The position numbers and the translations under genes were made by a program. Of a DNA stretch of 64,000 nucleotides, positions 1,994-38,745 are shown piece after piece. Origin of the DNA: Selaginella moellendorffii (Eukaryota; Plantae; Lycopodiophyta); the NCBI RefSeq assembly GCF_000143415.4, contig NW_003314305.1:1083974-1147973 (forward strand), written 5' to 3'. The notes below the pieces were generated by a model. It made no database searches. It was not told where the DNA came from and saw nothing but the letters and a program-made list of their open reading frames with translations. The number at the start of each line of letters is the position of its first letter. Position 1 is the stretch's first letter.

Positions 1994-3221
1994 TCAAAGG
2001 AAAAGTTTGGGATGGAAGGAGGGATGGAAGGGAACAAAAGCCGGCATTTGTTTCTTTGAACTTCTACTGCTACGCAACGTTCCAGATGCCAAATCAAAGA
2101 TGCAGCTCCACCTATAACGAAAGAGCAGTGTCACCTCCGTAGTGTGTTCATTTCCAGCAGCCACCATGAAGATTCTTCCGGGCTTTTTGATCAATTTGGG
2201 AATTTTAACAGTGCCCAAGCTCAAGGATGCCATTGCCCGCCAGCTGCAACTCTCCTCGTCCAGATACACAAAACAAACCCTGAGGGTTCTAACGTCTGTG
2301 TTTCTGTCATGTGTTTCGAGCATGCCAATCACTATCTTCCCTGCAAAATCAAAGTCGTCAGCATATACAAAACAACTCTTTTTCCTTACCTCCACTTGAG
2401 ATGAGGGACATGTCCACCTCGTACCAAGGTTGCCGTTCAAATCCCAAGGGAAGATTATTCCAGGTTGCCAGAGTTCGAAGGGTGGCCTTAGGGTTCCACA
2501 CGTTGAACGATTTAAGCCTCCTCACATTGCCCGGTGAAACAGTTAAAAAGTACAAGTGATCGTTCTGGAGCAGCATGCAGTTGTTGGAATAGTTGATGGA
2601 ATTCATTCTGACACCGCATACGAGGTCTTCATCCTCCTGGACAGGGGTGAATTCCGTAGAAGATATCCACGCCGCGGCCCTCGAATCGTACAGGTGGAAC
2701 ACCATGACCCCATAGCTGGTCTCTATGGTCACGACTACAACAAACCATGATCCAGAGGGTGGTGCCGACTGAATAGCAGCGAAGATCATTTCGTGATCAC
2801 CCTCCAGCATCGGACACCCCAGTTCTCGCCTCGTCTGTTGTAGCGGATTCAGCACCACAAAATATCTCGCAAACGTCGAGTCATAGCTCAGTACCAAGCC
2901 TGCCGAGCAAGTGCTCAAGGCAAAGATCCGGGCTTCCCTTGGAAGGGGGAGAGTGAACTCCTTCCAGGAGATGGCGTTGGGCGAGATGAGAAACTTGCCA
3001 TAGACGTCGCCAAGGGCAATGTACCACTGCTGCCGCGGTGGCTGCTGCTGGATTGCTGCGCACCAATCCTTGGAGAGGGAGCGGAAGCGGCAGAGCGTGG
3101 GGAACGGGAGGAAAGTGATGAGGCGGTGTTGGATGTCCTGGGGAAGCCGCGACCAGATTGAGGGATCCAGTTTCCTGCTTTTCTTCTTGTCTATCATGCC
3201 ATCCCAGTTCCTATTCGCCAT
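1994..3221 (-). pseudogene. Intronless F-box protein gene with a single frameshift (pseudogene or sequencing error)
   Basis: N-terminal F-box motif WSRLPQDIQHRLITFLPFPTLCRFRSLSKDW. ORFs 2358-3221 and 1994-2440 join as KEKELFVYADD if one base of the A4 run at 2369-2372 is removed. Confidence 0.75.
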
Positions 3222-10117: not shown

Positions 10118-10879
10118 ATGGCTACGTTTCTCGAGGAGCCCAAGGCATCCACCTCGGGCGGCGGTGGCGGCGGCTCCAGGAAGAGCGAGTGTATGTGTGT
10201 GGTGTGCACTTGCGGCCTCCACAAATGCCCGTCGCGCGAGACGAATCCCTACGACCCAAACATCCTGTCCGAGTATGGCGAGCGCTACCCGGAGTGGCCC
10301 ATCTCCAAGCGCCTCCCACACAAGCCCCCACCGGCGTGCAAGGACGACGGCCCCTTCGACGACAACACCACCTACAAGCTCGACTATGGCAAGAAAACCA
10401 TGCCCAAGCGAGCGCCCATGAGGCCTCCGGCGCGCGAGCAAGACACTGGGCCATTCGTGGACGCCACCACCTACAAGGTGGACTACTGGGACAAATCCAA
10501 GGAGCAAAAGCCCGCGAGGAGGGCCGAGAAGCCACACAAGGTGGAGTCGGGCCAGTTCTACGACGAGACCACGTATGGAGTGGGATACTGCCCAAAGCAG
10601 ATGCCCAAGAGGTGTGCTCCGCAAAAGCATGGCTGCTCGCTCGGGAACTCCGGGGCGAAGTTCGTGGATGAGACTACGTATAATGTGGGCTTCCAGGACT
10701 GGAAGGTGAAGAGGCCTGTGAGAGGAGGGCCGACTCGCAGCGCGCCTCCTCCGCAGAAGTTCGATGGGGATACGACTTACAACATCGATTTCACGAGGCC
10801 TCCGCCGGTGAGGAGGTGCCCCGTGCTGCTGCGAGGGAAGCCGTCCAATCTCGTCGATAACCATCTTTGCTACGACTAG
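10118..10879 (+). CDS. SAXO/FAM154 (MAP6/STOP-related) axonemal microtubule-stabilising protein, 253 aa
   Basis: N-terminal CMCVVCTCGLHKCP motif and five Mn-like repeats F-x-x-x-T-T-Y-x-x-[DG]-[YF]. Confidence 0.8.
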   Translation: MATFLEEPKASTSGGGGGGSRKSECMCVVCTCGLHKCPSRETNPYDPNILSEYGERYPEWPISKRLPHKPPPACKDDGPFDDNTTYKLDYGKKTMPKRAPMRPPAREQDTGPFVDATTYKVDYWDKSKEQKPARRAEKPHKVESGQFYDETTYGVGYCPKQMPKRCAPQKHGCSLGNSGAKFVDETTYNVGFQDWKVKRPVRGGPTRSAPPPQKFDGDTTYNIDFTRPPPVRRCPVLLRGKPSNLVDNHLCYD

Positions 10880-11400
10880 GAAAGCTTCTTCGGTTCTTCT
10901 CCTTCTTCTTCGTCTTCTACTTCTTTCTCCATCGTTCACAGCGGCTCGTGAGTCCTCCGAGGTATGTAAATATGTCGAAACTTTGATCGTTTTTTGACAT
11001 AGTGAATCTCTTGTTCTTCTTTCTGTTCTTCCTCGGGAAACTACTCACTCCTTAGTTTAGTTTCTTCTCGACGCCATCCATTTTGTGAATTATATCCTTT
11101 TCATGTAAAGCTCTCGATTATGCTAATGGTCTAAGAAAGAATTTGCAGCACGGATCTAGGAGGACGGAAATGTGACGATGTGATCTTTAAGTTTCTTAAC
11201 TTCACGCCAACTCTGTCATCTCCATGATCGCAAAAGTCACTAACAGAGGTAAAAGAAAGGAAAAGAGCATCAGAAGCCCAACACTTCTAAAGCGTTTGCT
11301 CATCAAGTGTCTAGGTAACTTATGTCTCTTTTTCACAGTCGTGGTGGTCTCTAGCTTGTCGAGAAAAATTCGTGGTTAAGACTGTCCTTGAACAAAAGAT

Positions 11401-11485
11401 TGGGATGAGAGAGCCTCGAACTCTCGACCTCAGGATTTCTCAGTAGCTATGAGACCTACGCGCTGACCAACTGCGCCACCATCCC
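11401..11485 (-). tRNA. tRNA-Met: Elongator tRNA-Met(CAT) with an 11-nt intron
   Basis: Reverse complement GGGATGGTGGCGCAGTTGGTCAGCGCGTAGGTCTCATA-gctactgagaa-ATCCTGAGGTCGAGAGTTCGAGGCTCTCTCATCCCA. The acceptor stem pairs, A and B boxes are present, and the intron follows position 37. Confidence 0.93.
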
Positions 11486-11715
11486 ATACAATCTAACAAA
11501 TAACTTGTCCTGGAGGAGAGTTTTTCACCTGTATTTCCTATCGGAAATTACCAAGAATGAAAAGCGACCAAATGTTGCTAATGACTGTTCGCTTGCATTC
11601 TATCTTGTGATGCTTGTGAACGATATTTTTGTATGAATTCCTCTATTCAGTTTTCTCAATTCTTTCGATAATTTTCAAATAGCAATGGTTTGAATAATTT
11701 TAGGGCTATATATAA

Positions 11716-12643
11716 ATGTCAGAACCAGTTGTGTACTGGGGATTGACCAGCAAGACTTGGGTGCTGTACAAAAGAGGAGCTACTCGGCGAATAGTTACCA
11801 AGTACTTTGGGGTACAGACTATTTTTCTTGACTTTTCGTTTCCTAGTTTTGTTTTCTTTTGTTTTTCGAGCTACAGTGGCTGGATTGTGGAAGACCGACT
11901 ACAATGCCATTGGCTTTATCTCGGTTATATCCACGGGGTTTGCACACTGTCAACTTTTCATCTATGAAGTTGAAGAACACATGCACAAAGCGTGAATGGA
12001 CCCTCAAGATCATCCTCAATATACCTGTCGACCTCGTGGATTGTCTGAGCAAACTGATCGATGTCAAATTTCTGGAGCAAGTCATTCAGAGAGCTCATCA
12101 TGAGTCAAGCCTAGAATTCCAACCAAACCAATTCGACTCTCCTGCTGCTACAGAGACCTACAAAAGGTTTGTGAGAGCTCTCGAGCGCTACGCCATCCTT
12201 GTCGATAGGGGCATTGTAGGTACGTGTTTGAAGTTCTGCCACCTTTTTATTTTCAAAAGCGATTATATGACCTGAAACTTGGATCAGATGAGATGCGGCA
12301 AGCGGTAGAGCGTTACAGTATCTCAGGTCTCAAATCTTTGGAGTTTGTGTTTCATGGAAGCTGTTTGCAAAACATAAACTCCATCCTTGAACAGGGTCTT
12401 GATCCCAAAAGGGCCAAGGACAAAGGCCACGGCCGTTTTCTCTGGGTTGGAAAGACTCCTATTGTGAGTGCAGCGTATTCCAAAGGCCAGGATGCCTGTG
12501 AGAAAACAATGGTGCTGTTTTTGGAGCTTAGAAATCACGGTGAATCCAGCTGGACTACTGATGGCAGACGAGCTTTGCCACTTGACAAGGCCAATGTTTT
12601 ACTGCCTGTGGCAAAAGTAGTCTCAACTAAAACCATCTTTTAG
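11716..12643 (+). CDS. WWE + PARP-like ADP-ribosyltransferase-fold protein, copy A, about 264 aa; exons 11716-11811, 11877-12219, 12288-12643
   Basis: WWE-like VYWGLTSKTWVLY...HTVNFSSMKLKN...REW. ART-like FVFHGS..NINSILEQGLD, GHGRFLWVG..P..S..Y, MVLFLEL and LLPVAKV. Phase-compatible GT-AG introns match copy C. TATA-like sequence lies just upstream. Confidence 0.75.
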
Positions 12644-12959
12644 CATTTAATATTCTTTAATTTTTAAAAGCTTTTTGGAGAACAAACTCTAAGAACCTAA
12701 ATTTATCCGTAGATGGTTTGGTAACTTTCTTGTTATGTGAGAAAGTTGCATTTCTTTCTTTTTTTCATTGTTATTTGTCATGACATTGATATTGTTATTT
12801 GCACATCTTTTCTCTATAGTCTTAATGTTGGAATGCTAGATTCTATGGCCTTGAATGGCATATACTTTGTATATCTATGGAAAAGCATAAGGATATTCTT
12901 AATCCAATGGCTTCCTGACAAGGACATTCCTCATTGTGGAATACCTGAATTGCCATAGT

Positions 12960-15230
12960 GGATCACAATGGATTACATTCCAGTTTGGTCTTAGCAGCAG
13001 TTTTACAATGTTTTACACTTTAAACTTCCTAATGGGAAATCTCCAATCTTCCAGATGAATATTTCCTAGTTATGTGGCATGATATGGCAATTGAAATTGG
13101 CCAGATCAAATGGTTATTCCCCAATGAAATGGAATCTTCCATAATATAGGACAATGAAAAATTTCCTTTTGCTATATTTTCCTAACAGGTCTGACAGGAT
13201 CCTGGCAAGAGAAAAAACCCCAATGGGACCTCTTGTCAAGACATTTTTCTTCTGAAGATATGTTTTGTCAGGAAGATTTTTCTTCCAATGGAGTTCATGC
13301 CAGGAGATTTACCTCTTGATGGATAATTATATTCCTGACAAAAGAACCCATTAGGACCTCCCAACGAATCAAATTCAATTTTTTCTTTCTATTGGTAGAA
13401 ATTTTCCTTCCAGGTTAAGGATTTCTTGTTAATGGGAGAAAGTTCTTGAAGGGAATCAGAAGATCTTCCCAATGGGATGTGTTTCCTCCCAATATGCTAG
13501 ATTCCATAAAAAAGAAATTGTTCAGGTTTACCAATAAAAAAGATGCCTCACAAGAAGTCATCTATATTAAAAGAATATTTGAGTATCACAAATTTTAACA
13601 ATAAAACTGTTGGTTGTCTTTTTTTCTTGTGACTTCGAAAAAGGTTCAAACAATAGTCAAGAAGCAAGTAAAATCAATTGTAACCAACTGGATGTTATAA
13701 GCCCATAAATAGTGATCTTGTGAGCAACATAGGTTACATGTTACTCACATGTGGTGAGGAAGTAAAGTACTTTAGTAAATACAGAGGGTGGTTATAACTG
13801 TAGATGTAAAAGCTAATCTCATCCAAGACTTCATACCAAAGGAAGCATATATCACTCAATAATGTTATAATCTATGGTTTTTTTAAATTTGTAGGCTGAT
13901 ATGCATGTAGCAAAAGTAGATGCTCTTTAGGTGCCTTATAGAAATCACCTCTAGTTTAGTGAATTTAATCACCTCAAAAGGGTACATACTCTTCTGCATG
14001 TCAATGATGCCCATGTGGTTGACGATATTTGTGAGGGTCATAATATGATCGTTTACTACAGCCAACTCATCATCTAGCTTCTCTGCTCTCAACCTCTCAT
14101 ACACCACCTACTCTTAAAGGTTGTAATTTGTTTTGATGCACAAACAGAGTTGATAGTAGTGTGTAGATTTGATGTCAAGGTGCCAAATCCATTGCAAAGG
14201 TACTACACAACTTTGGCTCAGGTCATCAACCACAAGCATTGTGGAAAGATTGCTCAGTTCCAATTCAATGTTGCTATTCTAACTTTATTGCATATATTCT
14301 TCATTGACCACATCCACAAGTCACCTTGAGGCTATGGAGGTGCTTACTGTATACCTACAATGCCAAAAAGAATTTTAAAAGGATAAAAGTGAAAAAAATA
14401 TTCTTACTTGGATATAGTGATGAGTAGCTTTGATTTCAACTAAACTTACTATCACTTCCTCTTATCTAGATCAAAAAGAGCCTTTGTGTGATGGGCTTAT
14501 ATGTTTCTTAACTTCTCTATCATTAACTAAATCATGGACATCTTTGTAGTGAACATGGTCTTTTTCATCATACCCCAGCTCTTTGATAATGCATTGGTGA
14601 TAGCTAATTGCTAGATTGTCCTCCTGCCCTCTCATGCCTCATGAGCAATCTCAAATACACTTTAGATGCATTCTAATAAGGCAGTTATGAGAACACATCT
14701 TCATATCTAGCAAGGTAGTCAACCATAGCTGATTGAAGCAGCATCCAAATAATAAAAAGAATACAAAAATGAGAACTAATTATGAATATAAACAAAACAA
14801 GCATATACATGATCCTCCGTGCTTGTCCAGCACCAACAATCAATCAATGCTGTCCTACTAGATACATCCCTAATATCACAACAATTGCACTCATTATGCC
14901 ACCCAATGCTGATCTTGCCCTTGCCTTATAACAATGACAAGAAACCCTAAACCCAAAACAGAGAATCACGCTTCAAGTTGTCTGTCTTGGGAATTACAAA
15001 GGAAATATTTACCATCGGGAGCATCTGCCTCTCATCAGGAAGTATTAATCTACCCATCGGGAAAGCATTTTCCCAATGGGAGATTTTCCCATCGGGTACA
15101 TTCCTCTCCCATCAGGAAAATTGCCATCCAAAAATCACTGTATCTGTTGGGGTATCACATCTCCATTGGATTTTCACCATATTTGTCAGGTATTTTCATG
15201 TGGATGCAGTGATACATAATTAATATTGAT
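12960..15230 (-). mobile_element. Highly degraded DNA transposon (hAT-like) with repetitive subterminal regions
   Basis: CCCAATGGGA-like palindromic motifs cluster at 13.0-13.5 kb and 15.0-15.2 kb. The minus-strand remnant near 14270-14360 (STSIAS...WSMKNICNKVR) resembles the hAT dimerisation motif. No TIR or TSD was resolved. Confidence 0.4.
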
Positions 15231-15261
15231 TTCTCATTCCTTTTCTATTACAGTTACTAGC

Positions 15262-15870
15262 GTTAGCCATATGAGCTGCTGAAAGAATACTTTCCAAGTA
15301 CTCTGAGGTATCTCGGTTTGCACACCATCAACTTTTCAGCGATGAAGGTGAAAAATACATGCACAAAGCATGAATGGAGTCTCAAGATCATCCTGGTCGA
15401 CCTCGTGAATTGTCTCAGAAAACTGATCAATGTCAGCTTTCTGGAGCAAGTCACGCTCATCCCACGACAACCCTGGAATTCCACTCAAACCAATTTTTGC
15501 CACCTTTTTCGTTTACAAAGGTGATTACATGATTACTGAAACTTGGATCGGATGAGATGCAGCAAGCGGTGGAGCAATGCAGCATCTTGGGTCTCAGATC
15601 TTTGGAGTTTGTGTTTCATGGAAGCCCGCTGCAAAACATAAGCTCCATCCTTGAGAGCCAAGGACACTGGCCATGGCCGTTTTTTGTGGGTTGGAAAAAC
15701 TCCAGTTGTGAGTGCAGAGTATTGCAGGAGCCAGAGCTGTGAGAAAACAATGGTTCTTGGAACTCACAAATCATGGTAAATCCAACCGGACTGATGGCAG
15801 ACGAATTTTACCGCTTGACAAGGCCGATGTTTTACTGCCAGCAAGTAGTTTCTAAGATTAAAGGCTAAGT
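15262..15870 (+). pseudogene. WWE + PARP-like gene, copy B (deleted and frameshifted)
   Basis: Close similarity to copy A (HTINFSAMKVKNTCTKHEWSLKIIL; SLEFVFHGSPLQNISSILE). Intron 1 and parts of exons 2 and 3 are deleted, and there are frameshifts. Confidence 0.85.
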
Positions 15871-16062
15871 CCATCTTTTAGAAAAAAGAGGTTTCCAAGT
15901 TCTCAACTGGTGAGATATTCTAGCAATAATAAGCTTAATCGTTTGACTTAGAGGTAGTGAGAACATCATCACGAGGATTTAGGGTTTAAGCGGCATGAAA
16001 GGGCTAAAAGTACTTTTTATAAAAAAGGAAATTTAGGGTTCCATTCTTCCATGGCGCGATGA

Positions 16063-19000
16063 ATGGAGGCCGGGGACTGGCGCTACCACGCCCCAACTCC
16101 CTCAAGGTATGGCGCGGGATTTTCCAATGCCGCTACTCCTCTCTCAGCTCGGATTCTCTTGGCGATGGATGGATTAGGGGCTGCCGCCGCTGCAGCTCAC
16201 GCGAATTCCATCGAGAGCGCGTGGATTGGAGCTGAGCTCTTCCTTCCTTCGACGGGTAGGCTGAAGCTAGGTTTCTCGGGATTGTTTGTGGGAATTGGCG
16301 TGCTTGGCAGGATGCTTTGTCGCTGCAAAGCGTCCAGCTCGCGAGATTGGCGAAATGCCGCGGCCTGTGCTGCTCAAGAGCAGCGATTGCGCTGGAATTG
16401 CCCAAGGAAATCGCGGTGACATCGCTGAGGATCACGCAGAGAGCGCTCACAAGGTTCTAGAAATTTTTCTTTGTGATGTTTTGGTTTAGCTTTCTTTGCT
16501 TTTCTTCCAGTACGCTCGCGACGGTTGGAAAATTCCCTTGTCCAGTACAATGCGTGGCTGCTGCTGGGGTCATAGCATTTGCTCTTTGGGGACTCTTGCC
16601 TTCCATCCAACTCATTCGTCGCAATATCTTCCAGGTGGAAAGATAGAGTTCGTGAATTTTTGTTTCTTTCTAGCTGATATTGGAGTGTTTCAATCAGCGA
16701 CGTGAATGGGACAAGAGTCGAACGAAGTACATACTTACGTCCTATGTCAAGCCTGTGTTATTGTGGGTTGCGATCATCGGAATATGCAGGTAGATATCTT
16801 GGTGTAACTTTTCTTTTCATGTTTTCTAGAACTTGAGATCTTGCAGGGCTCTAGACCCCGTCGTTCTTTCGTCCGAGACAAGCCAAGTTGTCAAGGAAAG
16901 ATTCTTGAATTTTCTACGATCTCTTTCAACTGTCCTGACATTTGCGTTTTGCACAGCGAGGTATGAAGCTTATTTGCCTCGGATCATGGATTTCTTTCTT
17001 CTTCTTTTTTTGGTGTGTTTCAGGATGACTCAACAAATTCAAAGGGTCATGATGGATCGTCACAACAATGAAGACTCTCGCAATGTACGTACTGTATGCT
17101 ACTTACTCTCTGTGTCATGAAAATCTGGTTAGTGATTGCAGCTTGGAATTCGTTTTATTGGCAGTGCAGTGTCCACTTCGGTGTGGGTGGCGGCTGTCTG
17201 CTTGTTTATGGAGCTCCTTGGTTTCTCGACTCAAAAATGGCTGACGGCCGGTGGATTCGGTACAGTGTTGCTGACTCTAGCAGGTCGAGAGGTTAGATTA
17301 CGTTCTCCTTTCTGTTTTCTTCAAAACAAATGACAGGATTTTATGTTTTGTAGATTTTTACGAACTTTTTGTCCAGTGTTATGATTCATGCTACCCGGCC
17401 GTTTGTTGAGTACGAGTGGATACAAACTAAAATCGATGGGCAGGAAGTTTCTGGTACTGTCGAGGTTGGTTGATACGTAAATTGTGTGTTATAGCAAATG
17501 GTAATCTAATGCCTTTCGATGTTTTCAGCATGTTGGCTGGTGGTCTCCTACAGTTATCAGAGGCGAAGATCGCGAAGCTGTGCATATACCCAACCACAAG
17601 TTCACGATGAGCGTTGTCCGCAATTTAAGTCAAAAAACTCATTGGCGTGTTAAGACGTACATTGGTCTCAGTCATTTGGATGCTAGCAAGATCCACGTAA
17701 GAAAACACTTATTGATTTTCTTTCTCTAAACACTTGTTCTTCCTTTCAGGTTATCGTCGCAGACATGAGAAAAGTTCTTTCCAAGCATCCACAAGTGGAG
17801 CACAGACGATTGCATCGAAGAGTGTTCTTTGACAACATCGACCCGTCAAACCAGTCGCTTATGGTAGGAAAACATCTTCATTTCTACTAATTCCTTTTTT
17901 TTCTTTGAATGCAGATCATGATTTCTTGCTTCGTAAAAACTTCCCACTACGAAGAATATCTCAGTGTGAAGGTTAGTATTTGTTCTGCCGCTACTTGCGT
18001 TCTTATGATTCTTCATGGCAGGAAATTATTCTTCTCAACCTGCTCAAAGTCATCAGCCATCACAATGCCCGACTTGCCACTCCCATTCGCTCTATCCAGA
18101 GGGTATACGACGAAGCAGAAACTCGCCAGTCGCCTTACAGAAACGTGTCCAACGAAGATGGCAGGCCGTTGCTCCTCGTAGACGCATCCGCAGTACCAGC
18201 CGAGTCTGGGAAGGCGAAGCATGAGGCGCCAAACACTGTCGCTCCTATCGAAGTTCCGAAACAGGATATGGAAGAAGCACAGCCTTCTCCAAAGACACCT
18301 CTCGAAGGTTTGGATTCCATGGGACTTAATGCTAAAGACATGAGCTTGCTAGGTGCGGCTTTCGAAAAACCTCCAGCAAAGATCTCGGAAGTCTCGGCTG
18401 ACAGTGGTGGCGAGCCAGCGACGATTAAGGCCGAGGACCAGAAAAGCAGCGAGACCGGCGAAAACACAAAGCAGCATTTAGGAAAGCAAGCGATCAAAGA
18501 CAGCAGCAAGCCACCAAAGGCGTCGACATCGCCCAAGGAACCCCCAGCTTCGCCGAAACGAGAGATCAAGCTGGAGGCGAGTAACGAGAGCACAGGGAAA
18601 GCGAAAGAGTTGCAAGAGACAAAGTCAGGACCATCCGAGACAGCGAAAGATTTGAAAGTGAAGCAAAAGGAAGCTAGAGACAGGCAGCAGCAGCAACAGG
18701 TGGACGATCCATGGAAAGAGACGGGGTCAGCAACAGCAACAGTAACAGGAACAGTTCCTTCTTCTTCTTCGAATCAAGCGAGCACAAGTAACAGCGAGGA
18801 ACAACAGGCAAAGAAATATCCTCCAACAAAGAGCACAGTCCAGGGAACTAACAACGAGGAACTACTGGCAAAGAAATCTCCTCCGACAACAAAGAGCACC
18901 GAGGAACTACAGGCAAAGAAATTTCCTCCAACAACAAAGAGCACAGGCCAGGGAAGTAACAACGAGGAACAACAGCTCAAGAAATCTCCTCCAGCAAACT

Positions 19001-19152
19001 TTGGAGAAGACAATCTAGTGCTAGGAGTAGCACTCGCTGGATCCAAACGCACGCTTTCACTGAGCGGCGATGGCGATGATAAGATCACGGGGGACTCGGA
19101 CACGAGGGGCGCTATTACTGCTGCTGGATCGCCGAAAGACAAAGATCTTTAG
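16063..19152 (+). CDS. MSL: MscS-like mechanosensitive channel of the plastid MSL2/MSL3 type, multi-exon; the start is approximate
   Basis: Exons encode [97 protein letters not shown] and [14 protein letters not shown]. Confidence 0.93.
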
Positions 19153-19616
19153 AGCAGCAGTGAGATCCAAGGAGGAAGAACTCCCAGGCATTAAATGGAG
19201 TTCTCCAAAGTTCTGGGAGGAAGAGATCAAGGAAGAAGAACTTCCAGGCATTATAAATGGAGTTCTTGGAGGAAGATGGTGGCCACAGTGAGTAAACTAC
19301 ACACACACAAAGATTTTTAGGATAAGTAGGTAAAAAAGGAGAAAAAACGAAGCCAGTAAAATTTTACCTATCGAGAGGTTGCCCGAATGCGGCCATCTTC
19401 TTCTTCCTGGGCGGCGATGGCGGCGGCGATGGAGAGGCGGCGCGATAGGCCGTGGGCTATGGATTGGGCGAATTGGGTGTGAGTCCCCGGCACCGCTCGC
19501 AAATGGGTACGCTCCAAATCCCGCAATTCAATCCGCCCGGGGGTGGTAGTGCCGCCCAGGACGTTTTAGGGCGTTGATGGAAGAGCAAGAGCAAGAGCAA
19601 GAGCACGCGACCAAGC

Positions 19617-21780
19617 ATGGGCGATCATCTGAGATACAAGCTCCTCCATCGCGCGCAATCGCCCACTTCCAATCTGCCCAAGCCGCTCTTCCAGGGGATG
19701 GACGTGGTGGGATTGAAGAAGCGCGGGCAGGGCATCCGGTCGTGGATCCGGATCGACCGCGCGGGCAATTCCCAGGTGCTAGAGATGGACAAGTTCGGCA
19801 TCATGAGGAGGTGTGAGCTCCCGGCTCGCGACTTGCGGCTGCTGGATCCACTCTTTGTCTATCCTTCCACGCTGCTGGGACGAGAGAAGGCCATCGTTGT
19901 CAACTTGGAGCAAATCCGGTGTATCATCACCGCGGACGAGGTGCTGCTCCTGAATTCGCTGGATCACTACGTGCTCCAGTACGTGAGCGAGCTCCAGCGG
20001 CGATTGATGCCGAGGATGACGAGCTCCTCGAGCAGTAGCAACATCGCTGGGAGATATGGTGGTGGTGGTGGGATTGGAGCGATTGGATTTGGAGGTGGTG
20101 GAGGTGGTGGTGGAGGGAGCTGGGAGTGTGAGAGTGAGGATCATCCGGCCAAGCAGGAGATGAGGAGGGCGGCGCTGATGAGAGAGACGGACATGTTTAG
20201 CGGATCGTCGGCGGCGGACGATTTGCCGTTCGAGTTTCGAGCGCTCGAGGTGGCGCTGGAGTCGGCGTGCACGTATCTTGATACACAGGTAACCAAGTTC
20301 TAGTTCCTCGATTCTTGGAAGAAAACTTTGGAAGAACTTTCATGCTTTTTTTTTCTTCTCTGAGATTTTTCAATATTTTTTTCTCTTTTGGTGCCTTTTG
20401 CTTTTTCTGTGATACTACTACTGATTGCTTCGTTTTTTCTCTTTTGTTCTTTCTCCTCTTTCCTGTGGCACGTTTTTGCTACTCACTGGTGGTCTTTTTG
20501 CTCTTTTTGACAGGCTACAGAGCTTGAAGAGGAAGCGTATCCAGTTCTGGACGATCTAACCTCGAAGATCAGCACGCTCAACCTGGAGCGAGTTCGTAGG
20601 CTTAAGAGCAGGCTCGTGGCACTCACCAGGAGAGTCCAAAAGGTACTGCTTTTACTCCGTTTCCCCTTTGGAAGCTTTCTTTCCATTGAAACCACTAAGT
20701 CACACTCCTTGTTCTTTCATTTTCGTTCCAACTTCACTGGTGTTTCCTCCAGCTTCCCAAGCTCACAAACCTCATTGTTGATCTTTGCTTCTCTCTTCTC
20801 ATTCTCTCCTATAAGTTTGCTGGAGTCACACCTTGTTCTTCGTTCCAACTTTACTCCATCTTCTTGAGCTTCCCGAGCTCACAAACCTCACTTGTTGATC
20901 TTTGCTTCTCTCTTCTCACATGAACTTTGGTGCTGTTCACACTCCTTGCTCTTTCATCTTCGTTCCAACTTCACTGGTGTTTGTTCGAGCCTCCCAAGCT
21001 CACAAACCTCATTGATACTTCATCTCACACGAACTTCCAGGTCCGGGACGAGATCGAGCACCTCATGGACGACGACGGTGACATGGCCGAGATGTATCTA
21101 ACCGAGAAGAAGGAGCGAGCCGAGGGCTTCTTGTACTCAAACAACGTCTGTGCGTCGGTGTCGGCCCCTGTGTCTCCGGTTGGCAGCCCGCCGACCGAGA
21201 AGATCAAGAGCCTGGACAAGACGATGAGCCTGGGAAGAAACCTCTTGGTCCAGCCACCCGGCTCGGACAGTGAAACGGAGCGAGTGGAGGAGCTGGAGAT
21301 GCTGCTCGAGGCCTACTTTGTTGTCATCGATGGCACGCTCAACAAGCTCACCTCGGTAAGGCGAAGGTTTCGAGATTTTCGAGTGAAAAAAAGAAAGGCT
21401 CGTGGTGTTATCCGTGTTAATCTCGCTGGTTATACACAGCTCAAGGAGTACATTGACGACACCGAGGATTTCATCAACATCCAACTGGTACTTTTCGAGA
21501 AGTTGTCGATCCAAGGTTTTTCGGTTTTTGATCGATGGTCTTTGTCCAGGACAATGTGAGGAACCAGCTGATCCAGTTTGAGTTGCTGCTCACGACCGCG
21601 ACGTTCGTGGTGGCAATTTTTGGCGTGATTGCGGGTGTTTTCGGGATGAACATCCAGATTGACCTCTTTGACGAGCCGCGAGCTTTCAAGTGGATTCTCA
21701 TCACGTCTGGCGTTGCTGGCATCGCGATCTTTCTCGCATTCATATTATTCTTTAAGCAGCGGAGGCTGCTGTCACTGTAA
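19617..21780 (+). CDS. MRS2: MRS2/MGT magnesium transporter; exons 19617-20288, 20514-20642, 21041-21355, 21440-21487, 21550-21780
   Basis: Motifs RDLRLLDP, REKAIVVNLEQI, LPFEFRALEVALE, DDDGDMAEMYLT and EELEMLLEAYF, plus the GMN motif with two C-terminal TMs. All exons are phase 0. Confidence 0.96.
20700..21015 (+). repeat. Three tandem copies of about 115-125 bp in MRS2 intron 2
   Basis: TTCGTTCCAACTT...CCC(A/G)AGCTCACAAACCTCA recurs three times. Confidence 0.8.
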
Positions 21781-21894
21781 AAAAAGTAAAGCCTCCGATT
21801 TGTGCAGCTGAGAGAAATAAGGAAAAGAAAGACCTTGCAGATCCATACCGTATATATACACGAAAGAAAGAAAAACAAAGCCATCCACTTTGGC

Positions 21895-23103
21895 TCACTT
21901 TCGGACGATCAAAACCGGGCATTTCGCGTTGTGAGTACAATAGTCGCTCACACTGCCAAGAAAAGTCCTGTGTCGGTCGAGAAAGTAAAAGAGCTTTAGT
22001 GATCTTCGAGAAGAAAGTGAGAGCTCACCGTTTGATGGCTCCGTGACCGCGGCTTCCCATCACCAGCAAGTCGGCATGGATCTTTTCCACGGCGTCGCAG
22101 ATACTGTCGCGAGGATCTCCAGTAGCCATCAGAAGCTCTGGGTGGTGGACCTGCGAGAAACGTGTATAAAAGACCATCTTAAACACAGAATAGGAGCCCA
22201 CATTGGCATCGCCGCAAATCCTCTTGGCTTTGTCGAGCAAGACCTTGCTTGAGTTCTCCTGGTGCTTCCTTGTGGCGGCCACCAAGTCGGGAGTGATGTA
22301 GAAGCCTACAGAACCAATGTCTTTGCGTTTCAAGCTACAATCCAAGGAAGAAAAGATCTACCAAAGCCAAAACTCAAGGAATGAAAGCTAGTAGAAAAGC
22401 ATAGACTGAATCCTAGCAAAAACCAACGAAGCTTTACCTGGTTTTAGAGCTGATGGAAGCGCAGATCACAAAAAAAACTCTATGGACTGAATCCTCTAGC
22501 AACAACCAACGAAGCTTTACCTGGTTTAAGAGCTGATGGACATGCGCAGATCACAAAAACTCTATAGACTGAATTCTCTAGCAAAAACCAACGAAGCTTA
22601 CCTGGTTTTAGAGCTGATGGAAATGCGTGTGAAGCGCAGATCACAAGGAGCAAACTTTGGTGCCAAAGACAAAAGATCTAACACCCATAGCTCTAATCGA
22701 GGAAACCATCACAAAGAACTCAAACCATAGCTCGAAAGAGAAAAAGAAGAGGAGCAAGCCCCACATTCTCTATGGAAAAAGCTAGAACGAGACGAAGAGT
22801 AGTACCTGGGCCGCCGGGACCAACGTAGCTATGGGGCATGAACTGCGAGTGTAGCAGCACAAGCCCATCCCCGGGCTGGACGACAGTGTCGAGAGCATAG
22901 CGGAGAGCTCGGATGCTTTCTTGGCTCTCGTCAATGGCCACGATGACCTTCTTGGCCTTGCGATCGCCGCCCACATTGACGGCGCCGCTGGGATCCGCTG
23001 CCTCGTCGCTGGCGATGGCAGCGGCGGCGATCTTGACGCTCTTCTTCTTGACCGGCGGCGCCTCCGCCATCACCACCGCCTCGCTCACTTCCTCGTCGCT
23101 CAT
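21895..23103 (-). CDS. Universal stress protein A (USP) domain protein, 4 exons
   Basis: KKVIVAIDESQESIRALRYAL; ATP-binding motif GDPRDSICDAVEKIHADLLVMGSRGHGAIKR; last exon (21967-21895) TFLGSVSDYCTHNAKCPVLIVRK followed by a stop. Confidence 0.93.
22400..22650. repeat. Three tandem copies of about 85 bp in USP intron 1
   Basis: ACCAACGAAGCTT(T)ACCTGGTTT.AGAGCTGATGGA...GCGCAGATCACAA occurs three times. Confidence 0.8.
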
Positions 23104-23204
23104 GTTTTGCCCTAGCCAAACACGTGGACTTCAACGGCTTACATTTGGCAGCATGGCATAGTGCCACGTGTTTTGTGAATATTCACTGGTATTCTTGGGC
23201 GTTG

Positions 23205-23205
<1 letters not shown>

Positions 23206-23242
<37 letters not shown>
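23206..23242. repeat. (CT)n microsatellite
   Basis: Seen directly in the sequence. Confidence 0.9.
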
Positions 23243-23246
<4 letters not shown>

Positions 23247-23338
23247 CACAATGTTAATTAACTTCTGGCATACAAAAAAAAAATGGACACACACAATGTC
23301 AATCAACTTTTGGCATACAAAAAAAAGATGGTGAAGTA

Positions 23339-24250
23339 TCAGCTATCGTTGAGCGAGTTTATAACTAGTTTTGCAACTGGCAGTAAGACATGGCTCTTGT
23401 TAAGTGGTACACTTCGTCTGCCATCCCAGGTCCAGTCGCTCTCGCCATGATTTTTGAGCTCCAAAAACAGCACCATTGTACGTGGGTCGCAACCACAGTA
23501 ACTCCAGCTCACCCGTGGAGTCTTTCCAACCCACAGAAAGGGTCCAAAGCCACTGTCCTTGGCTTTCTTGGGATCAAGACCCCGTTTAAGGATGGAGCTT
23601 ATGTTTTTCTGCCAGCTTCCATGAAACACAAACTCCAACGATTTGAGGCTTGAGATGTTGCACTTGTTCACCGCTTGCCGCATCTCATCTGCATTACCCA
23701 CCAAAGAAACTTAGCACAAAGGTTGGCAGGAAGAGCGTGAAAAGCTGGCAGACTTGTAGAGTTTACGTACCCAAGATGCTCTTGTCGTGGAGGGTGGCGT
23801 AGCATTGGAGAGCTCTCACGAACTTCTTGTAGATCTTTGTAGCCGGGGATAATTTGTTTGGATGGATTTGCGAAAAAGTAATCCCGGAATGATAAGGGAG
23901 GACAGTCGACTCCAAAAACTTGGCATCCATCAGTTTGATGAGCTCGTCCTCTACGGGCGCGAGGATTATCTTGACGCTTCTATCGTATCTTCCGAGTCTA
24001 CTCTTCAGCTTCATTGTCCCGAAATTGATACTGTGCCAACCTCGTTCACCCAAATCCAATGGCATTGTGGATTGCAGTGCGCTATTCAACCACTATAAAA
24101 TATGAATTGGAAAAAGAAAAGCAATCTTTGAAGAAGGAACAGTACCTCAAAATATTTGACAAGGATCTTTAGAGCAACGTCTTGCTTGTATGGCTTCCAG
24201 GCCTTGTTTTTGACTCGCCAGTAAACTCCCGGCTCCATCGGCATGGCCAT
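23339..24250 (-). CDS. WWE + PARP-like protein, copy C, about 258 aa; exons 24250-24146, 24092-23771, 23688-23339
   Basis: VYWRVKNKAWKPYKQDVALKIL...WHSINFGTMKLKSRLGRYDRSVK (WWE-like), then FVFHGSWQKNISSILKRGLD...GFGPFLWVGKTPRVSWSY...VLLPVAKL. Same intron positions and phases (0, 1) as copy A, and the spliced frame is open. Confidence 0.78.
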
Positions 24251-24429
24251 TTTTGGATAGACAAAACCTAATTAGTTGTAATATTTAATCTTTAAAATTT
24301 TTAAGCATCCGAAAATATTTTGGCACCTGGAATGCACAAACTGGCGTCTGTTTCTCTAGACAGATAAGTTTTTAGCGGCAAACGAGCAATGGAAGCTTCA
24401 GCTGAATTCACAGTGTATGGAAGATCCAA

Positions 24430-24640
24430 GTTTAATTTGCTGGATATTTTCTTCTTAAGACACTGTTAAGATCTGCAGGTTCTATTAGAACTTCTCCACT
24501 TGGCTTTGCTGGGATCAAGGTCTTGTTTAAGAATCCAGTTCCCGTGAAACACAAACTCAGCGCGCTGAGACTCGAAATGCTACCCGTTGCTGTCTCTTCT
24601 CTTTAAGAAAATCCATCACAAAGTTGGCAGAGTTTAAAGT
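24430..24640 (-). pseudogene. WWE + PARP-like gene, copy D (fragment of the catalytic exon)
   Basis: The reverse strand encodes EFVFHGNWILKQDLDPSKAK, with frameshifts nearby. Confidence 0.65.
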
Positions 24641-26964
24641 AAACAGCATATACCCAAACCTCGCTGAATGAATTTTGCATAGATTTCATGAGTCCAAGCT
24701 GTTTGGCAGGATTTTCTTGATGATGTGCTTAGAATAGTTTGCCTTACAGAAACGTGTAAGATGGCAGATCGTGGAGGCCTTGGCAGAGGGAAGAGTTAGG
24801 CATGCTCGAGCTTGTGTTTCAAGGGAGCGGGATTGAGAACATCTACCTTGAGCCAAGTGGTAATGGGTGAGCTCTGGATACAAGTGAAGTTTACAGAGGG
24901 TTTGGAAGAACTTAGTAATTAGTAACTAAAAATGTTACTAATGTTTTATATGTTAAAATTATATTTTAATTTTTTCTAAAACCGCTTGGCTTGTTTAATC
25001 TGATTTATTAATCCAATTAATCAAATGGAAGTATATAATTATAAACATGTTTATAATTTATAAACATTTATTGAATATCAACCATTAGATAGTAGAATAA
25101 CTAGAATATACTAGGAAGTGTTTAGGAAAGTTTGTTTATAATTTATAAATACAAGATTAATCTAGATTAATAACAACTGTTAGATGGTAGAATATTCTTG
25201 AATATTCAAGCATATTCTAGGTATATTCATTATCATCCACATGTTTATTTGCTTAAGAAAATTAAAAACTTACTCTAAACATTATTACTATAAACTTCTC
25301 ATAAATGACTTACTTATCAAATGCTTTCCCAGATATACCAGATATATAGTATTTAGAGAATCAAAAATTTTGCTAAAGAAAATTTCCTCTATTTTAAAAG
25401 AAAAATATTTTTAATATAATTATTTTGTAACTATAATTTGATAATGTTTTCTAAATTTAATATTTTTTTATTTTATTTTATTAACTTTTATTATAATTTT
25501 ATTAATATATTAAGTTTTATAAGTGCATGGAATACAGAAATATGCATATTAATTAACCTAAAAACTCTAACTTATATGCAAGAGCAATTAGTCCTGATTA
25601 AAACCAATCTGACAGCTATCAAAATCCCACTACACTAATATTAATATATAGCATCATAGCCATACACTTGGATATCACATCATCCCCTCCTTTTAGAATG
25701 ATGGAAAATAATTAAGATTCTTTAGTGGATGGGCTGAGATCTAGAGGAACAAGCATCAATGGATCTATAAGTGATATTAATTTTTCCTGATCCCTTTATA
25801 TAAAGCATTTCAACTATTGCATATGTATAATTAATGTAGTGCACTTTATTTCTTTCCGGGGAGAAAAACCAATTGAAAAAAGGGCAATTGCTTAATGAGA
25901 GAGCCCTTAGTGGCTATTTTATCCCCATTTATCTCCCAAGGTTCTAAAAATTCACGGTAACAATATATCCAAATTTCATCCCATGATCACATGCGCTACA
26001 GTTTCTAAAGGATCAGCCTATTGGACATCATGCCAAACCTCATAAACTTGTGGTTTAATTTGCCACAATACACGATATAGTCCTTTATAATGAGCAAAGA
26101 GCCCTTTAAACAAACCATGTGCCGTAAGATTAAGAAAATAAACTAACACTAAGTCATCCACTTTGTACTCCATAGGTGAATGATAATGAGAGTTGTAGCA
26201 TCATTATTATCCCACTTGTAAGTGGCCTAAGTGTTCAACAGACTCTACTTGGATTAGTGGAATAATGCTTCACAGATATTAATCCCAAGACTATTATTGG
26301 TAGCTCGTCCCTTTGAAGGTTCGAATGAGCCATTTCACCAAACTATCTGATTGTGAATGATAAACACTCGTGAAAGTGTGGCATATTCCCAATTGAGATG
26401 TTAAAACATGAAATGCCTTAGCCATAAATATAGAACCATTATCTGAAAGAGCTCACTTCGGACATAAATGCTAAAATACCACTCGATTAAGAAGGAAGTA
26501 TCTAACAGCAGTTGTAGATGTACTAGCAAGAGCATTAACTTCCACTTAGTGAGTTAAGTAACTAGAAGCAATAATGACATACTCGTTACCAATAGTCAAC
26601 TTTGAAGAAGGCCCCATCAGATTAAACGCCACTAACTCAAACATATGGGAAATTACAATTGATTTCAACTATCCTTCTACAAAATGAGAGGGAGTTTTAC
26701 AAGCTTGGAATTAAATGCAACTATGCACATATTGGATAACATCACATTGCATCTTCGGTCAATAGAGAGCTACATAACTTCTTAATCACACAATGATGTC
26801 CTATATGCCCACCTAGAACAGGAGAATTATGGTAGGCATAGAGAAAGCATGGAATAAATATCAAAAACACTATCAGCTGTAAATGATCATCAGGATTCAT
26901 CCCCACAAAATAAAAAATATCATCCTTAAGGTGATATTGAGAATGTAAATATTGAAATGGCAAG

Positions 26965-36849: not shown

Positions 36850-38745
36850 TTACAAGTTGATCTCTTCAGTCTTAAGCTCTTCGGATTTGCGCAATCTATG
36901 AAAGATTAGAACGACTGCTGCCACAAAGATAACAAATTCCAGTGAGCACACCCAAAATAAGATTGACCACTTGGGCATCACTTCAATAGTGGAGGTGGTG
37001 GTGATCAAAAAGCTGGTACCGTTCAACTCCTGGATGATTGTTCCAGAGGTGGCAAGACAACGCTTTAGTTCCACCTCTTTGATCATCTGAAAGATGCTGA
37101 ATGTGTTCCATATCATCACTCCAATGAGGATTAAGGCCCGTGCAAATGTTCTAAGCACTGAAAGTTGAAACTCTGTCCAAACAAATCTGATGAGCGACTT
37201 CTCAAAGTTCTCCGATGACTTGGCAAACATTCCCCAGATTGTGGCCCCGATCGTGAAGATTGCCACCAAGATCTCAAAGAGAACTCGAGCTCTCTTTGAA
37301 GACCCCTTCTCCCATTCATTGAGGGCGAACCTCTTTATGTCCGCAACGTTTGCAAAGACATCCAGTTGCTGTGCTAGCATTGACATTTCTCCCGAGGGCT
37401 TGAGCTTCGTCATGCTTAGCATGCACAAGGTCTGGGTCAGTGCTACTTGTCCTTGATCCATGCCACAGTAAACGTCCTCTTGTGTGTTGCCAATGGGAAC
37501 TTTATAATCAAACGTCTCTCTCATCCCCGATGCAGCAAGTGGGAATCGCAACATCATTTCATCGCTGTGATAATCAAGGTTTGCCATGCCTTGAAGGGAA
37601 CAGTCCTGGGAGATGGTTGTAAGAGGTTTTTCAACCGGCTGTTGCTCCAGCCATCCCTGAACACACGAGCTTACGTTCTTTATGATCCCATAGTTAACGT
37701 CCTTCATCGCCTCTGAAAAATTTACAGCTGAACCAGAGCTAAATGTCACTTCAAAAGTGAATGATCCGTTTCGTTTGAGGCTGTATGTAGAGAACATTGG
37801 AACTATGCCCTCAAGATTCCAAAGAGTGGAAGTCCTGCTACTACAGCTCGTAGAATTCAGCTTCAAAGGAGATATGCCTTGGTCCGAATCTGACAGCTGC
37901 GTCAAGTTGCTGTCAATGATGCAAACGTTCCCATCACAGCCACACTGATGGGTTGGAAATCCCAAATACGATATTACATCCGGAATGACGAAAACGGGCT
38001 TGGATGCTTCACATACGTTTCCTTGGTACACATACTTGTTAACGTTGTTTCCCTTGCCTTTGTCAATCGTGAGCCCAAGTTGAGTTCTAGCGTTACTTGC
38101 AAAGTTGGTCAAGTAATCTCCCCAGGGCAAATACAGGGAGCTGCTGCTAACCGAAAACATGTTTGACGAAGCCTTTCTGTACGGAACGCCCACCATGAGG
38201 ACCGCATAAGAGCCCGTACCATTTGCATGGAGCTTGTTTGTCCAAACTACAGGAGCAGTGAAGAGACACGGGTCGCCAGTCATTCTGGGCAAAGTGATGC
38301 AGAGTCGAACACTCATCCCCCAGTTGATAGACATCTCCCAAGCCAAACCTTTACTTACACGGTGAAAGACTCCTCCTAGAACGTGGGGATCTGGAGAGTT
38401 GAACATGCTTGTACCATTTGATCGGGCATCTTTCATTCCAGAGATTCTCCATACACTTGCCCGCTGGTAGCCAAGAGTGCCTTTCTCGTCGAGCTTAAGT
38501 GCCATTGGAAGTGAGGAGCCAATTGCCCACTTGTAGAATGGATCGTTGTTTATAGCGTAGTAACTCACCTCCCAGCAGGTAGAACCGTGATCTTGTGCGA
38601 GATCAGGAAAGTAATAACCGGGAGATGACGATGATTTTATCATTCTTGGAACCCAAACGTTGATGCATATTAAGGAAGCAAGGACAAGTGAGACCAAAAC
38701 CACAATACATTTCATCTTGATGTTTTTGAAATCCTTTGGTCTCAT
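36850..38745 (-). CDS. Orphan intronless 631-aa membrane protein: N-terminal TM, Cys-rich ectodomain of about 450 aa, three C-terminal TMs
   Basis: Uninterrupted 1.9-kb ORF with four hydrophobic segments, 12 Cys and 7 N-glycosylation sequons in the large loop. No family recognised. Confidence 0.8.
   Translation of the reverse strand: MRPKDFKNIKMKCIVVLVSLVLASLICINVWVPRMIKSSSSPGYYFPDLAQDHGSTCWEVSYYAINNDPFYKWAIGSSLPMALKLDEKGTLGYQRASVWRISGMKDARSNGTSMFNSPDPHVLGGVFHRVSKGLAWEMSINWGMSVRLCITLPRMTGDPCLFTAPVVWTNKLHANGTGSYAVLMVGVPYRKASSNMFSVSSSSLYLPWGDYLTNFASNARTQLGLTIDKGKGNNVNKYVYQGNVCEASKPVFVIPDVISYLGFPTHQCGCDGNVCIIDSNLTQLSDSDQGISPLKLNSTSCSSRTSTLWNLEGIVPMFSTYSLKRNGSFTFEVTFSSGSAVNFSEAMKDVNYGIIKNVSSCVQGWLEQQPVEKPLTTISQDCSLQGMANLDYHSDEMMLRFPLAASGMRETFDYKVPIGNTQEDVYCGMDQGQVALTQTLCMLSMTKLKPSGEMSMLAQQLDVFANVADIKRFALNEWEKGSSKRARVLFEILVAIFTIGATIWGMFAKSSENFEKSLIRFVWTEFQLSVLRTFARALILIGVMIWNTFSIFQMIKEVELKRCLATSGTIIQELNGTSFLITTTSTIEVMPKWSILFWVCSLEFVIFVAAVVLIFHRLRKSEELKTEEINL

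Follow-up and report, generated by a model that had tools for sequence, protein, structure and literature searches.

We analysed a stretch of 64,000 nucleotides from the genome of the lycophyte Selaginella moellendorffii (NCBI RefSeq assembly GCF_000143415.4, contig NW_003314305.1, positions 1,083,974 to 1,147,973 of the forward strand), hereafter the window, which carries two intact genes that we call copies A and C. These genes probably belong to a multi-copy family specific to Selaginella, made of proteins of about 245 to 265 amino acids (aa) that join a WWE-type domain to a very divergent ADP-ribosyltransferase (ART) domain of the PARP type, of about 170 aa, and have no other domain. A third member, paralogue E, is encoded elsewhere in the genome of the species and already has a UniProt entry. 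Hence, the family is not wholly unknown. It represents a divergent form, in a plant, of the WWE-PARP kind already known, and not something categorically new. A full-text literature search found no paper describing the Selaginella WWE-ART family.

Both genes were read from the DNA as models of three exons (Table 1). Each gene has two short introns (65 and 68 nt in copy A, 53 and 82 nt in copy C), all with GT..AG borders, and the interrupted codons are the same in both: one in phase 0 after the 'KYF[GE]' codon, the other in phase 1 in the Asp codon before 'EMRQAV'. A preliminary description of this DNA had proposed three-exon models with identical intron positions and phases, and our reading matched them to the base. 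All the WWE and PARP motifs that it quoted were found in both copies, which have in common YW-x5-W-x2-Y, [IV]NF-x2-M, FHGS, NI-x-SIL, GLDP, FLWVGK, VS-x2-Y, and LLPVAK.

According to profile searches and structural models, exon 3 encodes a real but very divergent PARP/ART domain. The exon pieces were scanned separately, and exon 3 alone makes up about two-thirds of the ART domain. With the Pfam PARP profile (PF00644, curated cut-off 26.7 bits), exon 3 of copy A scored 23.6 bits (E 4e-5) and that of copy C 19.8 bits (E 6e-4). Among 1.84 billion representative proteins, a profile of these two sequences had 85 matches, and all the 78 distant matches that were scanned carry Pfam PARP at E <= 0.001. 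Exon 3 is collinear with these relatives throughout, and its H, G, N, LDP, Y, and LP positions do not vary among them. Since the profile similarity extends upstream into exon 2 (hhalign E 0.0013), the ART domain starts near residue 95 and has a length of about 170 aa. Among the 30 nearest clusters by language-model features, 17 belong to PF00644.

Comparisons with known structures gave the same family. In the PDB, the profile of the family and its relatives matched PARP13, PARP12, KptA/Tpt1, PARP1, and PARP16, with E-values between 2e-6 and 5e-5; with the Selaginella sequences alone the E-value was only about 0.07. An AlphaFold2 model of exon 3, computed with the relatives in the alignment, reached a predicted local distance difference test (pLDDT) of 75.6 and a predicted template modelling score of 0.70, and the best 50 Foldseek matches of this model are all PARP-family or KptA ART domains. 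VIA-align placed 107 to 113 of its 117 residues on PARP10 855-1007 and PARP12 531-681 (Z 10.1, root-mean-square deviation 2.5-3.1 Å), with PARP13-15, the tankyrases, PARP16, and Arabidopsis RCD1 within one Z unit of this match. The assignment of the C-terminal part to a PARP/ART fold, made earlier from motifs, is thus borne out by near-threshold Pfam scores, by the PARP domains of the relatives, and by the modelled fold.

Other domain assignments were tried and rejected. A J domain in the middle region was discarded, as the DnaJ matches are not significant (E 0.9-1.4) and this region aligns better with the beginning of the ART domain. Residues ~67-106 of exon 2 (11877-12218, +, in copy A) weakly resemble, at E ~1, the segment of J domains from helix II through HPD to helix III (copy C has 'HPNK' there), a likeness that we took as chance. 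An ankyrin repeat in exon 3 was suggested by a match of the Selaginella-only profile to a designed repeat protein (E 4e-4), through four weak 'GLDP..A.D.G..P' repeats. This reading was rejected because the motif is common to PARP relatives and the fold is that of an ART domain.

WWE modules in other proteins bind ADP-ribose or iso-ADP-ribose. The N-terminal part of the family is probably such a domain, as suggested by sequence and model comparisons that are each weak but concordant. It is split by intron 1 in copies A and C, and the Pfam scan was made on paralogue E: residues 10-60 match positions 4-63 of the WWE profile (PF02825; 67 positions) with a score of 16.5 bits (E 0.012). An ESM Atlas model of residues 1-72 of paralogue E, of low confidence (pLDDT 0.47), matched ten cluster types, nine of them WWE-bearing (template modelling score 0.65-0.71), and these PF02825 clusters include PARP11, TIPARP, and Deltex. 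Using hhalign, the N-terminus of the family was aligned on the WWE domain of the protein CBR_g12815 of Chara braunii with a pairwise E of 0.013, and exon 2 of copies A and C alone with an E of 0.012. The alignment is collinear from 'GVYWR..W.pY' to 'F..M.L.N....R.VKI', and its support is modest since these E-values are pairwise. The WWE domain put forward in the preliminary description gained a Pfam match below the cut-off, fold matches of the low-confidence ESM Atlas model, and an alignment to Chara, but it was backed neither by AlphaFold2 nor by sequences of the PDB, as detailed below.

Using tblastn with the six exon pieces, we found exactly four copies in the whole window, i.e. A, C, and two relics, B and D, in agreement with the earlier count of two intact genes and two relics. 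In relic B, exon 1 is gone, and so are about 100 nt at the border between exon 2 and intron 2 and 20 nt inside exon 3; a frameshift of 5 nt and a mutated acceptor add to the damage. Relic D lies about 230 bp upstream of copy C on the same strand. The similarity among copies stops where the coding sequence stops. There are no shared flanks or terminal repeats between them, so nothing indicates a transposon, and we rejected a transposon-borne gene on the ground that the similarity is confined to the coding sequence.

To quantify divergence, dN/dS was estimated by the Nei-Gojobori method, summed exon by exon. Copies A and C have a dS of 1.0 and a dN/dS of 0.31, about 6.7 standard errors below neutrality by our own estimate. 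The pair A-E gave similar values (dS 0.9, dN/dS 0.36), and the pair C-E a dS of 0.42 and a dN/dS of 0.61. Since the reading frames and splice sites are still open at a dS of about 1.0 with a dN/dS of 0.31, the gene models exceed what chance would give, and copies A and C are both kept by purifying selection, as had been supposed from their open frames, and the ratio is not near 1. The higher value for C-E suggests faster change or relaxation, and paralogue E also carries a deletion in the WWE domain. Intact copies under purifying selection occur alongside relics B and D, in line with the birth-and-death pattern noted earlier.

Table 1. Features of the WWE-ART family in the window, and one further open reading frame (ORF).
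Feature	Position	Strand	Description
Copy A	11716-12643	+	3 exons, 264 aa; read from DNA
Copy A exon 1	11716..11811	+	32 aa; first half of WWE-like domain
Copy A exon 2	11877..12219	+	114 codons + 1 nt; second half of WWE-like domain to ~12017, linker, start of ART domain ~12108
Copy A exon 3	12288..12643	+	117 codons + stop; PARP/ART core; motifs FHGS, FLWVG, VSAAY, LLPVAKVV
Relic B	15279-15852	+	Decayed tandem duplicate of A; 77-78% nt identity
Copy C	24250-23339	-	3 exons, 258 aa; read from DNA
Copy C exon 1	24146..24250	-	35 aa
Copy C exon 2	23771..24092	-	107 codons + 1 nt
Copy C exon 3	23339..23688	-	115 codons + stop; Pfam PARP match; no RNA reads in three runs
Relic D	~24481-24615	-	Exon 3 fragment only; LEFVFHG and LDP-x-KAK motifs kept
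F-box ORF	2361-3221	-	100% identical to SELMODRAFT_419973, scaffold GL377609.1 of GCA_000143415.2

The active site of the ART domain departs from the canonical pattern. In exon 3, the residues H22, G23, S60, and Y63 do not vary among A, C, and E, and the H, G, and Y are invariant in the distant relatives too; the NAD-contacting His-Gly and Ser-x-x-Tyr motifs are kept in the three paralogues. The position of the stacking Tyr in GxGxYF is occupied, in a gapless alignment, by a Trp that is invariant in A, C, E, and relic B ('FLWVG'). At the position of the catalytic Glu, which is required for poly-ADP-ribosylation only, the alignment read against the PARP10/12 pattern has Ala in copy A, Ser in copy C, and Thr in paralogue E. 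The triad read from the alignment is thus H-W-(A/S/T), not the canonical H-Y-E, and differs from that of PARP11 (H197-Y229-I313; Table 2 of PMC2848248) and from that of PARP12 (H564-Y596-I660; PMC2848248). In RCD1, Leu and His take the first two triad positions and NAD is not bound (PMC2848248). The contrast drawn in the preliminary description with the degenerate His of the SRO family stands, as the NAD-contacting His is kept in copies A and C, unlike in RCD1. As in mono-ARTs, only a short loop precedes the strand on which the catalytic Glu would lie. Since this Glu is absent and the acceptor loop is short, the predicted activity would be that of a mono-ADP-ribosyltransferase at most, if the proteins are active at all.

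We infer that the family may have an ADP-ribose reader/writer activity and a role in defence. The WWE domain would dock the protein on ADP-ribosylated targets. The ART domain would then either transfer single ADP-ribose units, in a substrate-assisted way as in PARP10/PARP11, or be a pseudo-enzyme that binds NAD+/ADP-ribose, two outcomes that we consider about equally probable. The family itself changes through tandem duplication and decay. Its members would be tractable proteins of 26-30 kDa for asking if a plant WWE-ART protein writes as well as reads ADP-ribose.

Several observations weigh against this account of copies A and C. Their Pfam PARP scores miss the curated cut-off by about 3 and 7 bits, and the WWE score of paralogue E is also under its own (21.1 bits). 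The alignment used to model exon 3 contains PARP relatives, and the evidence from fold and homology is therefore not fully independent. The WWE domain is mainly documented in paralogue E, which has itself a 17-codon deletion in that domain. AlphaFold2 reached a pLDDT of only 44 on the N-terminal part (P0001:1-127), and the N-terminal profile matched no WWE structure among the PDB sequences. The Gln of the WWE motif 'M-x-Q' is a Leu in A, C, and E, and the following Arg is also gone in A. We take these residues to be contacts of iso-ADP-ribose in the RNF146 WWE structure, and their alteration makes the predicted ligand binding uncertain too. The replacement of the Tyr by a Trp and the absence of the Glu make the predicted catalysis equally uncertain.

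Expression also weighs against functional genes. We mapped three RNA sequencing runs of the species, all from one study and with about 12% of each run read, to positions 19500-24700. Two neighbouring genes provided the control, one encoding an MRS2-type magnesium transporter (15-80x, with clean GT..AG joints) and the other a universal stress protein (USP; 15-33x). Over copy C and relic D, the depth is zero in the three runs, except for a single bin with a depth of 0.28 in one of them. The splice junctions that the preliminary description proposed to check with RNA have no reads over copy C in these runs. Given its well-covered neighbours, copy C is silent in those samples. Furthermore, no transcript-derived protein of the family was found in the protein collections searched. 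The expression is probably restricted to conditions outside the sampled runs.

The alternative that best withstands these data, and which we regard as a real if minority possibility, is that the proteins are pseudo-enzymes. Their ART domain would no longer bind or turn over NAD+, and they would act only as adaptors or readers, by means of the WWE domain and the scaffold of the ART domain, a role that has been proposed for RCD1 and PARP13. The triad H-W-(A/S/T) in place of H-Y-E/I fits this idea, as do the sub-threshold Pfam scores and the very long branch of the ART domain in our tree (see below). However, the His, the Gly, and the Ser-x-x-Tyr are invariant in all copies, a Trp could stack on nicotinamide like a Tyr, and the strands of the active site are also under purifying selection.

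It is unlikely that copies A and C are non-functional, i.e. that, like relics B and D, they belong to a dying family and are silent and in slow decay. In favour of such decay are the absence of reads over copy C next to well-covered neighbours, the lack of an annotation of either A or C as a gene of its own, the C-E dN/dS, and the missing transcript-derived proteins. Yet, frames of about 260 codons, both pairs of splice sites, and the start codons have remained intact at a dS near 1, with the low dN/dS given above for A-C. Relic B, although a younger duplicate, has already accumulated five or more disabling lesions. The RNA data come from a single study and cover the side of copy C.

The nearest relatives of the ART domain were mostly found in environmental eukaryotes (P0004-P0085), with the motif 'FHGT..NI..IL..GLDP..R.GQAYGPGEYF'. 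These compact PARP domains are 24-31% identical to those of Selaginella, are collinear with them from upstream of FHG to the last strand, and match Pfam PARP in all the cases scanned. However, only one in 78 carries a WWE domain, the Tyr is kept, and many of the proteins have C-terminal tails resembling coiled coils, or UBA, ankyrin, macro, or FHA domains. The protein of Chara braunii mentioned above (CBR_g12815; GBG73099.1, UniRef A0A388KSS9), from another streptophyte, has 374 aa. It has a Pfam WWE domain (E 7e-12) collinear with the Selaginella N-terminus, a compact C-terminal PARP domain that groups with those of Selaginella in the tree, and no RST domain, but it is longer, with an extra middle region, and it keeps the Tyr (GGDYFG).

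The tree was built from 71 ART domains, with no SRO or PARP1-16 references among them. The three Selaginella sequences form a clade with support 100/100 and a stem of 1.9 changes per site, which adjoins Chara and two other long branches (support 97/69). This grouping of Selaginella with Chara may be an artefact of long-branch attraction. A bolder scenario, which we consider improbable, is that the Selaginella and Chara proteins form a WWE-ART lineage lacking the RST domain that predates, or is sister to, SRO/RCD1. The Selaginella branch would then be an active mono-ADP-ribosyltransferase with a new His-Trp site, expanded by birth and death through immunity or genetic conflict.

Among animal-type systems, the architecture recalls PARP11 and the WWE-bearing PARP7/12/13, where the WWE domain is directly followed by the PARP catalytic domain and nothing else. 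The Selaginella proteins (244-264 aa) are smaller than the representative of the PARP11 cluster (344 aa), and PARP11 itself has 338 aa. These PARPs, which belong to 'Clade 3' (Citarelli et al. 2010, PMC2964712), also lack the catalytic Glu and have the short acceptor loop of mono-ARTs, but PARP11-type members have an H-Y-[ILV] triad. PARP12 and PARP13 are the best sequence matches in the PDB of the profile of the family and its relatives (E 2e-6 to 5e-6), and PARP12 also matches the exon 3 model at Z 10.1; the sequence identity is nevertheless only 11-18%. No plant members of the WWE-bearing Clade 3 have been reported (PMC2964712). Surveys of plant ADP-ribosylation list only PARP1-3-type enzymes, the SRO family, whose WWE-PARP-RST proteins are inactive, and bryophyte Clade 6 PARPs (PMC2964712, PMC2848248, PMC4245714). 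Our results suggest that there is a fourth type, which selection has maintained in a lycophyte and which Chara perhaps has too. Its proteins are small, retain the NAD-contacting His, and lack the RST domain. A family of this type would be relevant to the origin of RCD1-type proteins.

The public annotation of the reference genome gives a different picture of these genes. The NCBI model over copy A encodes 397 aa (window 10118-12692, +) and fuses an upstream ORF resembling SAXO with parts of A. It has a faint SAXO1-2 match and ends at a TAA 49 nt past the stop of A, in another frame. This model is probably a chimeric artefact of ab initio prediction. We find it very unlikely that copy A is really the 3' part of the SAXO-like gene, as this annotation spanning both would have it: the SAXO-like ORF has its own stop at 10879, 836 bp before A, an in-frame TAA lies directly 5' of the ATG of A, C and E, whose upstream neighbours are unrelated, begin with sequence homologous to exon 1 of A, and the end of the model past the stop of A in another frame is typical of such artefacts.

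Paralogue E corresponds to SELMODRAFT_426508 on the S. moellendorffii scaffold GL377648.1 (L001 6001-6856; UniRef D8SWK8, also P0001) and was automatically named 'WWE domain-containing protein' in UniProt/UniRef. In the SELMODRAFT_426508 model, a false intron is spliced from exon 3 and the frame is then lost, whereas this exon (L001:6485-6835) is open and intact when read straight through. A deletion that keeps the frame has taken most of intron 1 from the gene, together with about 17 codons at the start of exon 2. For copy C, profile and word-index searches of protein collections found no protein resembling the family. Word-index searches gave no match for exon 3 of copy A (candidates of 64-205 aa) and only P0001 itself for paralogue E (candidates of 117-371 aa), and exact look-ups of three ORFs of the window in the protein collection found no match. 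Hence, the reference genome has an annotation gap for this family: A is fused to its neighbour, E is mis-spliced, and C was apparently not called.

The RST domain, which ends the plant WWE-PARP proteins of the SRO/RCD1 family, is absent from A, C, and E. The three proteins stop 6-9 residues past the last ART strand, with tails unrelated to each other, ten ORFs downstream of A have no Pfam domain, and there is no room for an RST exon downstream of C, since only 236 bp separate its stop from the ATG of the USP gene, with no RNA joints linking the two. The preliminary description was right to call these proteins devoid of RST. As the tree contains no SRO or PARP1-16 sequences, the relation to SRO was judged only from the architecture, the active-site pattern, and the ranks of the PDB profiles. 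Like SRO/RCD1, the family is encoded by a plant and has a WWE domain followed by a PARP-like domain without catalytic Glu, an arrangement equivalent to the N-terminal two-thirds of RCD1; unlike it, the Selaginella proteins have less than half the length of SRO proteins. That A and C are ordinary SRO/RCD1 members with an overlooked RST exon is highly implausible: the match of the RCD1 PARP domain to the exon 3 model (Z 9.7) ties with that of every other PARP, RCD1 is not among the 60 matches listed in the profile ranking, where PARP13, PARP12, PARP1, and PARP16 appear, the His that RCD1 has replaced by Leu, along with the Tyr replaced by His (PMC2848248), is kept here, and the stops shortly after the ART domain and the regions downstream of A and C, described above, also speak against it.

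Further observations concern the neighbourhood of these genes. A candidate allelic haplotype of the window (L003) was rejected, as it proved to be unrelated and to hold a partial paralogue of the F-box gene. At 22401-22627, in the long intron of the USP gene, there are three overlapping copies of a unit of about 81 bp with 89-93% identity, and a minor alternative joint of this gene (22304/22601) was seen in one RNA run only. In the MRS2-type gene, about 50 RNA reads per run match only an island of 35 nt (21284-21318) and continue on both sides into other sequence. Their loose ends are consistent, and they come either from the transcript of a paralogue or from an expressed allele that differs from the assembly. 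Many positions of the MRS2 and USP transcripts (19522-22933) have a second base in about half of the reads in all three runs, as expected of two haplotypes in the sequenced plant. Farther along the window, an ORF of 631 aa (36850-38745, -) has no Pfam match, and its exact sequence is not in the protein collection. The ORFs at 45346-46944 (-), next to runs of N at about 28.1 and 33.8 kb, look, by eye only, like the reverse transcriptase and integrase of a long terminal repeat (LTR) retrotransposon.

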